Source: Pecten maximus (taxonomy: Eukaryota). From it: a stretch of 64,000 bases of DNA. Under the pieces are notes generated by a model, which saw nothing but the letters and a program-made list of their open reading frames with translations, made no database searches and was not told the origin of the DNA. Of the stretch, positions 57,588 through 60,444 are shown in pieces. Both the position numbers and the translations under genes were made by a program. The number at the start of each line of letters is the position of its first letter. Within the stretch, counting starts at the first letter, position 1. The stretch lies in assembly GCF_902652985.1 (NCBI RefSeq), contig NC_047018.1, forward strand, positions 37,820,001-37,884,000, in the 5' to 3' direction.

Positions 57588-57895
57588 GCCTGTGACTGAC
57601 AAACATATAGATCAAATAACGAGTTTACATGAATGAACATAATGTTGCAGTGTCACATGGCTAATATAATGCACTTCAACAAAATACAACAGGATATTTA
57701 AACATGGGGCAGTATAGTATGCAAGTGTAAGGCTAATATAAGTAGCAAACCAAGTGATGTTCAGAAGTAACTTGATCAGTTGTTATAGTTTGTATCATGG
57801 CTAACGATGGGTCTTGTGGTTGACATTTAATCTGTTAAGCTGTTTGTTAATTTCGGTAAAACATGCGTAAAAATAGAAATTTCAGGAAAACACAG

Positions 57896-59766
57896 TGTTA
57901 TATATATGTAAAATATATATTTTAGGTGACCATGAAATGTCTTAGTTCCGGATAATGTCAGCCAGTTGTTTATATTTTGGTTCGAATATTAGTTTGCTTT
58001 GTTGTTTTCCGGAAGATAAAGGGTTGCCGCCACGAAGCGAGAATGATGGTGTTGTGTTGTCATTTCTCTGGGTAATTCCCCCAACGTATCCCTCGATTGT
58101 AACATGGTGGAGAATCCAAACTCAAGGAAACCTCAACTGCCAAGCAAGTGCCTCATCGTTTTATTTTGATTTTATCGTCGAATTGTAATGTGAACTTATT
58201 ATTTGCGTAAGCATGTGTGTGGCAGGCAGCCGCTGTGACCGTTTGATGTGTGTTATGCCTATGATGTGACTGTATTGCCGTTTCATTTGTCTTTGTGATT
58301 GACACGATTTATACCATTGAGATGCTACCAAATCAGATAGTACGAATATTACAAACCTATGACTTGAGGTTCGATTCCTTACCGTTTAAATACGAGCTCA
58401 AGGACGACCAGCATCATTTATCACTTAGTATTGAGTGGGATTTGACAGGTCATGGTGATTCCTGTGATATTACCAAGGTTAAACCGAAATCAAAGTCGCC
58501 GTCACAGATCAGGCACGGTAAGCGACGAACCAAGGCATGGAAAAGGCGGAAAGGGATTAAGAGTCATGATCAGGTGGTTATTCCAAAGAGTACAGACGAC
58601 TCTGGTGTTTCTGTTGAACAGCCAGTTTTACATAGTGTTAGTGTGATGACACAGTGTGACCCTAACCCTGTTAAGCCTATCAGCATTGAGCCTAAGCCTG
58701 AGGTTATTGCTACATCATGTGTGAAGTCGCCTTCGAGTCATCCAAAGACAGCGCTATTGAATATTGGTAAACCCGTTTGTGAAGGAACGTTAATTGCTCA
58801 ACCAACAGGTCAACCTTTCAATAATGTGCACCAGATCAACCCTCCAAAAACTATCACAGCTGGATTCGGTCGTGAGGAGAAAGCCAATTCTCTACCGACA
58901 AGTCCGTGTGATGATGACTTTGGGTGGGACACAAACCCATTTGCTCAACAAATGTCGAGAAAGAGGAACTTGACATCTTCGCAAGTCAATCATGTGACCA
59001 CTGTTTCGAAACAGTCCAATTTTGACAGTATTGTGAAAAAGTCTGATGATGGGACATGCTCGATCAACTCCAAAGACCTACTAGCATTTCTGATAAATAA
59101 GTGATTTTATAATTTGACAATATCTCGTTACTGAAGTGATTTAAGTCGGTGTTGTAGACTGTTTATAGATGATACGTTATGCATTGTCGAGTAATATTGA
59201 TAATATTATCCAATGGGAACCCTATAAACAGTGTATATATACGTACTATACAGTTTAGTTTCAGCATACATGTATATATTACAGATTATTGTGTTATGTG
59301 GTGCTGCAATTGTATCTTAATTAATCTAGTGAGATTATGATGTTTCAGTTTTATATATTATGTTATGATGATGAGTGAGTAACATTTCTATTTGGCATAT
59401 GGACTTTGTGGAATGACTGAAATTTCAAATGTTGATCTATCATAATCAGATCATTGATTTATAAATAATAACTACATGTATGTACTTTGGGTTTCTAATT
59501 CATTTCATGGTTCTTCAAAAAATTTCCCTAGGGTAAAATTTTTGTTTTGGGGGGGCATGTTATATATATGTAAAATATATATTTTAGGTGACCATGAAAT
59601 GTCTTAGTTCCGGATAATGTCAGCCAGTTGTTTATATTTTGGTTCGAATATTAGTTTGCTTTGTTGTTTTCCGGAAGATAAAGGGTTGCCGCCACGAAGC
59701 GAGAATGATGGTGTTGTGTTGTCATTTCTCTGGGTAATTCCCCCAACGTATCCCTCGATTGTAACA
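57896..59766 (+). mobile_element. Young non-autonomous LTR retroelement (TRIM-like, 1871 bp) with a single ORF
   Basis: Identical 209-bp LTRs 57896-58104 and 59558-59766 (TGTTA...TAACA); PBS TGGTGGAGAAT 58105-58115; PPT GGGGGGGCA 59549-59557; TSD ACAG at 57892-57895 and 59767-59770. Confidence 0.95.
58322..59104 (+). CDS. Uncharacterised 260-aa protein inside the LTR element
   Basis: Uninterrupted ORF from ATG 58322; basic motif KPKSKSPSQIRHGKRRTKAWKRRK; no RT, IN, protease or zinc-knuckle motif visible. Confidence 0.7.
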   Translation: MLPNQIVRILQTYDLRFDSLPFKYELKDDQHHLSLSIEWDLTGHGDSCDITKVKPKSKSPSQIRHGKRRTKAWKRRKGIKSHDQVVIPKSTDDSGVSVEQPVLHSVSVMTQCDPNPVKPISIEPKPEVIATSCVKSPSSHPKTALLNIGKPVCEGTLIAQPTGQPFNNVHQINPPKTITAGFGREEKANSLPTSPCDDDFGWDTNPFAQQMSRKRNLTSSQVNHVTTVSKQSNFDSIVKKSDDGTCSINSKDLLAFLINK

Positions 59767-60444
59767 ACAGTAAGCTCATGTGGATCACGTATATTGCACA
59801 ACATAAACATGCCGTTATTCTCACAAGTGTCTATAGCTGGTAGTGTGGGCATTTGTTTGGCCGGATTTGACTTTATAAACGCATATACAGTGTACATTGA
59901 ATCTCTTTTGATCTTGAAATGCAAATGGCGGCTGTGAAAATTCAAACAAATATTGCATATAGCGAGACATTTCAAGCATCAAACATGTGTTCTCATTAAT
60001 CACTATGAAGAACTTCGAACATAGCAATAAGCATGTTTTAGGGAAAATAGTTCAACAGCAGAGTTTGAGGTAAAATATGCAGATTTCTGAAAATACTCCC
60101 AAACTCCACTGTTTAACTTTTTGTTTCGAAAACATTTTTTCATACTATGCTAATATGTCTTGTTTGTATCTAAAATGGCATTTTGTTGTTGATTGAGATG
60201 CCTCTTTATATGTAATATTTGTGCACTATAATGTAGCGCCACTCCTATTTCGGTTCGGTTTATATATATATGAAATAGACCACAGCGTCAATACACAGTC
60301 GCATACTACATAACATGGTCGTAAACACACAACGAAAAAATATATCATAGCGTCACCTTGATCTCATGCTATAACACAGTTGTCAACACACAAGGACAAA
60401 CTTCGTCACAGCGTCAATGCAAACTTTTAACATATACTGTACAT

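Follow-up and report, generated by a model that had tools for sequence, protein, structure and literature searches.

The analyzed window is a stretch of 64,000 nucleotides of the Pecten maximus genome (RefSeq assembly GCF_902652985.1, contig NC_047018.1, positions 37,820,001 to 37,884,000, forward strand); coordinates given without prefix refer to it. On its plus strand, at 57896-59766, it harbors a long terminal repeat (LTR) element of 1,871 bp. It is close to certain that this element is a recent insertion that belongs, as a young copy, to a non-autonomous LTR family, and just as nearly certain that the family carries a selected open reading frame (ORF) which is not gag. The target-site duplication ACAG is found directly 5' of the element (57892-57895) and recurs directly after the 3' LTR (59767-59770). 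The 5' LTR (57896-58104) begins with TGTTATATATAT, comprises 209 bp and is identical to the 3' LTR (59558-59766) at 209 of 209 positions. Both are of the form TG...CA, with TGTTAT as first and GTAACA as last letters. Immediately 3' of the 5' LTR lies the primer-binding site TGGTGGAGAATCC (58105-58117), which complements the last 13 nt, CCA included, of tRNA-Ala(AGC). It is followed by a leader (58118-58321), with six ATG triplets between primer site and start codon, and by the sole long ORF (58322-59104, 260 aa plus TGA; from the ORF listing), which occupies about 54% of the interior. The 3' untranslated interior (59105-59535) contains no ORF and is AT-rich, with 71% A+T over 59105-59557. A conserved block consisting of a T-rich box and a G-run polypurine tract (59536-59557) abuts the 3' LTR; the tract itself reads seven G followed by CA and ends at 59557. 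Hence, the element shows all structural features of an LTR retrotransposon, i.e., TG...CA repeats, copy-specific duplications, a tRNA primer site and a polypurine tract. An initial annotation of the stretch had placed the LTRs, the primer site, the G-rich tract and the ACAG duplication here, and all of them are present.

The ORF, the only one in the element exceeding 80 aa, gave no Pfam match above noise: neither reverse transcriptase (RT), ribonuclease H (RNase H), integrase or protease nor gag or a zinc knuckle was found, in agreement with its first description as one intact ORF of 260 aa outside gag and pol. Lacking these functions, the element must be copied by enzymes provided in trans by an autonomous LTR retrotransposon. 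A search of 57700-59900 against Rfam gave no match at an expectation value (E) ≤1, either to a ribozyme (including the retrozyme-type hammerhead) or to any other RNA family, and RNAalifold detected no conserved RNA structure in the leaders of six families. Five of six aligned leaders (B, C, L066, L067, L068) contain a CACGTG palindrome resembling an E-box, located about 110-170 nt past the primer site (alignment columns about 140-175); it is missing from family A, to which the window element belongs.

A search of the whole genome (918 Mb, 3,983 contigs) revealed at least 14 full-length copies of family A with 92-100% identity, along with truncated copies, older copies at 68-84% identity and matches restricted to the LTR. 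A clear 4-bp duplication of its own was identified for 13 of the 14 full-length copies (copy L013 being unclear); besides ACAG, these were ATAC, GTGT, ATTT, CTCC, GCTG, TGCG, AAAG, CAAG, ATGT, CCAT, GAAC and TGTG. The two LTRs are identical to each other in nine of the 14 copies, and the primer site is the same in all. Two isolated LTRs also bear duplications of their own, CAAA and ACAT, and are therefore solo LTRs left by recombination. The family A copies arose by separate integration events, and the integrase involved cuts with a 4-bp stagger. The lack of any difference over 209 bp sets only a loose upper bound on the age of the window copy; the identical LTRs, taken together with the RNA contigs described below, suggest that the element may be currently active. 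It is not a one-off deletion derivative but belongs to a young, multi-copy and recently amplified family.

Two arrays of possible relation to family A were observed in addition. At L023:2019-3430 (C3:47692688-47696155), 24 nt of the ORF region (element positions 528-551) occur at least eight times beside an old family A-like copy; seven recurrences are spaced by 44-132 bp, which resembles a minisatellite seeded from the element. At C5:38263004-38265360, a 14-mer spanning the family A LTR end and primer site (GTAACATGGTGGAG) was counted 16 times within 2.4 kb, all on the same strand and separated by irregular distances of 21-390 bp; it may represent a tandem array derived from the LTR/primer junction or an unrelated satellite.

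When the genome was searched with the protein, the ORF N-terminus gave weak matches outside family A, and reading of these loci yielded two sister families. Examples are L062:7127-8909 for family B (1.78 kb, LTR about 191 bp) and L064:7882-9776 for family C (1.90 kb, LTR 211 bp). Common to families A, B and C are the LTR start TGTTATATATAT, the primer site, 4-bp duplications, a single ORF of 242-260 aa and, ahead of the 3' LTR, the block TTTTGTTTTG followed by a few bases, a G-run and an A. Elsewhere their DNA can no longer be aligned; only 48 bp around the polypurine/LTR junction align. The polypurine-plus-LTR-start pattern was found 29 times in the genome as compared to twice in the control. 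When these polypurine sites were paired with primer sites, the interior measured about 1.4-1.5 kb in families A, B and C and 2.14 kb in a fourth family, D, whose polypurine site adjoins a match to the profile of the N-terminal protein module (C13:27246896-27247213). This profile gave 40 genome matches, all of them in open frames of ≤402 aa, and five of the six profile matches in family C are open. Family D shares the cis signals and the ORF with the other three. The elements of 1.8-2.6 kb, i.e., families A to D and their relatives in other scallops and in a metagenome, are an old group, every member of which keeps one protein of about 240-280 aa under purifying selection. A family B copy on C394 that seemed to be longer was discarded; this copy has decayed and contains an unrelated insertion, and it is not a coding intermediate. 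Long tandem arrays were noticed within a few kb of the fetched family B and C copies (L061:5179-6396, L063:2116-5253, L064:1518-3322), one of them made up of 42-bp units over about 3.1 kb; the proximity could be fortuitous or reflect preferential insertion near satellites.

Relatives of the protein were also found outside Pecten maximus. Searched with a profile, 1.84 billion representative proteins gave only 11 matches, the credible ones being 124-293 aa long, and a word-index protein search with the family alignment gave three proteins only. The only named protein that was matched is "uncharacterized protein LOC117320744 [Pecten maximus]" with 91% identity. Four of the 11 matches derive from short assembled contigs of public runs; three of these contigs were checked and all contain the primer site CATGGTGGAGAATC[CT]AAA. 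Contig L066 carries the same polypurine block and the LTR start TGTGATATATAT, and forms a cycle of 1,693 nt whose ends overlap by 30 nt, as is expected of an LTR element in a de Bruijn assembly; its match to the Pecten maximus genome is limited to the 111-bp polypurine region. Contig L068 shows 66% identity to family B of Pecten maximus. Its source run, SRR23580857, represents the metatranscriptome of gills of Argopecten irradians, the bay scallop (PMC10989825). Furthermore, two distant relatives were obtained. The protein P0010 is encoded on metagenome contig L069, which shows an LTR end followed by TGGTGGAG as well as a diverged 3' LTR. The protein P0009 (E 7e-4; L070:100-981, run SRR26459402) combines the N-terminal module and the basic KSPS helix described below with a C-terminal MYND zinc finger; its contig is mRNA-like with no LTR signals visible, and P0009 could be a host or domesticated relative. 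A bacterial repeat protein (P0006) was dropped as a spurious match, and an insect protein without Pfam family that matched in eight stretches (P0011) was dropped as probably spurious. No relative was detected in IMG/VR with the family profile.

The ORF of family B was compared with that of Argopecten over 234 codons, both frames being open. The rate of nonsynonymous substitutions (dN) was 0.32 and that of synonymous substitutions (dS) about 1.0, corresponding to a ratio of 0.31-0.33. Additionally, the ORF indels which distinguish the subgroups of family A (30, 9, 6 and 3 bp) all preserve the frame, whereas non-coding indels do not have such lengths. These codon comparisons indicate that the ORF is under purifying selection between lineages. 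The proposal that the element maintains its own protein is thus supported: the ORF is open in 11 of the 14 family A copies and hence not broken in most of them, several species and no fewer than four families have retained it, and dN/dS between the scallop genera is about 0.32.

The protein starts with a helix/beta-hairpin module (about residues 1-40). An invariant KSPS motif together with a basic helix occupies residues 58-77, and a long Ser/Pro/Thr-rich stretch in the middle (about 82-232) is disordered; an acidic-aromatic motif and a C-terminal helix motif are conserved as well. AlphaFold2 predicted a helix at residues 4-16, a beta-hairpin at 22-39, the basic helix at 60-77 and a short helix at the C-terminus, with about 150 residues being disordered. 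The basic helix was predicted confidently, with a predicted local distance difference test (pLDDT) score of about 96 at residues 61-70, and the calculated isoelectric point of residues 46-82 is 11.5. Six residues, W39, K58, S59, P60, S61 and R69, are invariant in 12 proteins from all lineages. Two more motifs recur in several families, the acidic-aromatic DDFGW-D/E-T/S-NPF and the C-terminal helix SINSKDL-x-AFL; their order is different in family C. Neither Pfam nor PHROGs nor NCBIfam holds a family for the protein, the ESM Atlas gave no usable match with the whole protein or with residues 1-85, and PDB sequences returned non-significant rows only. The model of the whole protein, with a pLDDT of 45, was too poor for a structure search; Foldseek was run with the N-terminal model, and this search, which the initial annotation had called for, gave nothing at E ≤0.001. 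Neither a capsid-like helical domain in the predicted model nor a zinc knuckle in Pfam or PDB sequences was detected; the ORF is not a recognisable gag fragment, since no gag, capsid or CCHC match was obtained in these two collections. The KSPS basic stretch resembles cucumovirus 2b silencing suppressors at the level of a motif; at E 0.17-0.19 this similarity is non-significant and serves as a lead only.

Expression of the element was examined in public runs. Eighteen runs from six studies, four of them recorded as RNA-Seq, contain most of the element's words. Contig coverage of 57400-60300 was mapped for four runs from three studies, of which two are recorded as RNA-Seq. Each of the four runs yielded one circularly permuted contig of 1,692 letters over 57925-59557, which equals the complete LTR-plus-interior cycle of 1,662 bp plus an overlap of 30 letters; no contig covered the intergenic flank 57594-57884 in any of them. 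Such an unbranched cycle fits full-length genomic RNA, running from the repeat and unique 5' regions to the unique 3' and repeat regions (R-U5 ... U3-R), and does not by itself show circular DNA. The Argopecten contig provides independent evidence from an RNA library of a second species. As to the check for expression, contigs from RNA libraries thus cover the whole LTR-plus-interior cycle.

A genome pattern search identified 21 tRNA-Ala(AGC) genes with the complementary acceptor end as compared to none in the control. They show the anticodon-loop sequence of tRNA-Ala(AGC), a G3:U70 pair and the 3' end ...CCCGGATTCTCCA. With CCA added, complementarity extends over 13 nt in families A and C and 12 nt in family B; for the window element this is 2 nt more than had been counted when tRNA-Ala(AGC) was first named as the primer. 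Within 22 kb at C2:26484801-26506382, thirteen of these genes are clustered on the two strands, and twelve of the thirteen are identical; a second cluster of four genes is located at C7:26143045-26147054. The 14-mer CATGGTGGAGAATC occurred 184 times in the genome and not once in the control. Only about 35 of these sites could be assigned to the mini LTR families, so many other LTR elements seem to use the primer; tRNA-Ala(AGC) is probably shared with them.

The helper should be an autonomous LTR retrotransposon which is primed by the same tRNA and acts on the same LTR ends. The initial annotation had assigned it to Gypsy, which is one of two candidate superfamilies: no helper was found, and a 4-bp duplication, being compatible with Gypsy or BEL/Pao, does not separate the two. 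A genome search with the LTR alone scored only family A copies, and among 65 metagenome contigs containing the primer 18-mer none had the ORF or a pol downstream. As the one candidate, two LTR-like sequences on C14 (30966372 and 30975070) show 88% identity to the family A LTR and are 8.7 kb apart; the LTR-end-plus-primer pattern gave no match there. Upstream of a degraded family B copy, a 398-bp repeat pair of 99.5% identity was observed (L065:185-4219; C394:167185-171219). Frames resembling RT and integrase of the Gypsy type are located between these repeats and immediately past them, and the tRNA-Ala primer site is absent.

The insertion site was examined as well. When the flanks were joined without the element, they aligned across the junction to 8954-9174 of the window (minus strand) with 75.7% identity. 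Therefore, the paralogous segment is uninterrupted, which agrees with the earlier statement on the other copy of this host repeat. An ORF at 56532-57602 (minus strand) encodes a CABIT domain (PF12736, E 1.5e-9); its distance to the element is about 290 bp, against roughly 300 bp given before. With a copy of the element that close to a CABIT-domain coding exon, this gene may be affected. At 59906-59936, very short contigs (about 32-94 letters) from all four mapped runs end with unrelated loose ends; these ends probably mark a repeated word or the edge of a small exon near the insertion.

Taken together, the element looks like a long-lived parasite or satellite of another retrotransposon. We propose that its protein serves the element itself, most likely as a small nucleic-acid-binding adaptor. 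During translation, the basic helix with its invariant KSPS would bind to RNA of the element itself. The N-terminal module and the C-terminal motifs would dock this RNA onto helper particles or host trafficking factors. Such docking would let an element without RT compete with its helper for packaging. We infer this role of the protein, an RNA-binding adaptor that brings element RNA into helper particles, with a probability that comes near to an even chance but may stay somewhat below it; the explanation as a whole, i.e., a mini LTR family copied in trans together with an adaptor protein, has about an even chance of being correct.

Several results weigh against this explanation. RNA binding is supported by no match to a fold or family. 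Within family A, substitutions are equally frequent in the ORF and in non-coding parts, and a dN/dS of 0.5-1.0 indicates little constraint on recent copies, which is as expected of decay after insertion. Of five family B copies examined, one is open. Between primer site and start codon, three to nine upstream ATGs were counted in six elements (families A, B and C and three contigs of other species), which makes translation from full-length RNA awkward. The contig from the runs differs from the window at eight letters, all of them being the letters of most other copies; since it matches these copies better, transcription cannot be assigned to the window copy. The RNA contigs are assemblies of a multi-copy element, to which DNA carry-over might have contributed. 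Finally, a comparison of coordinates placed none of the 150 best matches to RVT_1 within 6 kb of a listed primer site.

Among the alternatives, the ORF could be a gag diverged beyond recognition, or the remnant of a gag N-terminus with a nucleocapsid-like part, which co-assembles with helper Gag. It stands in the position of gag, first after the leader and with no other ORF in the element, and it has a basic segment; moreover, gag evolves fast and gag-only parasites are known. We nevertheless consider this unlikely. A match to Retrotrans_gag, a capsid or a zinc knuckle is missing, and a predicted helix/hairpin of roughly 40 residues, one basic helix and about 150 disordered residues leave no helical capsid-like domain. 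Furthermore, the module never heads a long gag-pol frame, be it in the genome or among the 1.84 billion representative proteins.

We assign a still lower probability to a regulatory accessory protein, which would either suppress small-RNA silencing or export unspliced RNA like Rev or the CERV protein of Cer1. The resemblance to cucumovirus 2b, with KSPS placed in an arginine/lysine-rich helix, points in this direction, but the match (E 0.17-0.19) is non-significant, covers about 10 residues and is of biased composition. The basic stretch could also serve as a nuclear localisation signal, and export accessory proteins do occur in LTR elements (PMC10309623). A suppressor acting in trans, however, would aid the helper and all elements equally, so that retention by each element of its own copy is harder to explain.

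The ORF might also be a captured piece of a host gene, with selection acting on a host-like function. P0009, in which module and KSPS helix are fused to a MYND finger on an mRNA-like contig lacking LTR signals, is what one would expect in that case; yet this relative is borderline and could equally be a domesticated copy. In addition, those genome profile matches at E ≤0.01 for which the DNA was read or the distance to a listed site is known all lie in such elements, two further matches (C19 and C4:8724444) not being placed. Capture from the host is therefore improbable. A chance origin of the open frame, or derivation of the element by a one-off internal deletion, as dN/dS near 1 in recent copies might suggest, is refuted by at least 14 copies with separate duplications, at least four families, several species and a dN/dS of 0.32 at a dS of about 1.

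Non-autonomous LTR elements are usually seen either as passive non-coding riders, such as miniature retrotransposons with terminal repeats (TRIMs) and large retrotransposon derivatives (LARDs), or as gag-only cripples. Its length and its coding interior set the scallop element apart from TRIMs, and it is not recognisable as a gag-only derivative either. The dS of about 1 between scallop genera and the distant metagenomic relative imply that its protein has been retained for a long time. A lineage without RT that diversified while keeping a selected non-gag protein implies that this protein keeps the parasite competitive. It is a doubtful but conceivable extension of the adaptor explanation that the elements represent an undescribed class of satellite LTR elements, which lost the canonical retroviral genes and kept one unrelated protein of helix-hairpin and KSPS helix for hijacking particles or shielding RNA. 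Knowledge of the protein's role would reveal how, in animals, a retroelement can live at the expense of another. The family would add proteins without known relatives, and it matters for the annotation of bivalve genomes, where gene predictors label it as an ordinary uncharacterised gene (LOC117320744).

Four known systems can be compared with the element. In non-autonomous LTR elements that retain gag, e.g., barley BARE-2 and maize Zeon-1, the ORF is a recognisable gag. Such gag-only elements resemble the scallop element in that they lack RT, depend on a helper and have one ORF in the position of gag; the scallop ORF differs from theirs by having neither a capsid nor a nucleocapsid signature and by being mostly disordered according to prediction. 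Half-L1 (HAL1) encodes ORF1p only and borrows its enzyme. It may be regarded as a functional analogy, in that an RNA-binding protein alone is kept, whereas it belongs to the non-LTR class and its protein is unrelated. TRIMs, including biv-TRIM of bivalves, are likewise small and non-autonomous; their LTRs are short (100-250 bp), and target duplications as well as solo LTRs occur in them too. In contrast to the scallop element with its 1,871 bp, its conserved ORF of 260 aa and its 13-nt tRNA-Ala site, they are shorter than 1 kb and non-coding. For biv-TRIM, a canonical primer site is lacking and a helper was not found either (PMC6934838). CERV of Caenorhabditis elegans Cer1 is an accessory export protein of an LTR element (PMC10309623), and plant Ogre/Retand elements have additional ORFs beside a full gag-pol (PMC11963269). 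Like these, the scallop protein is a lineage-specific extra protein of unknown fold kept for the life cycle of a retroelement; CERV and the Ogre/Retand ORFs, however, accompany a full gag-pol, whereas in the scallop element the protein is encoded by the sole gene.

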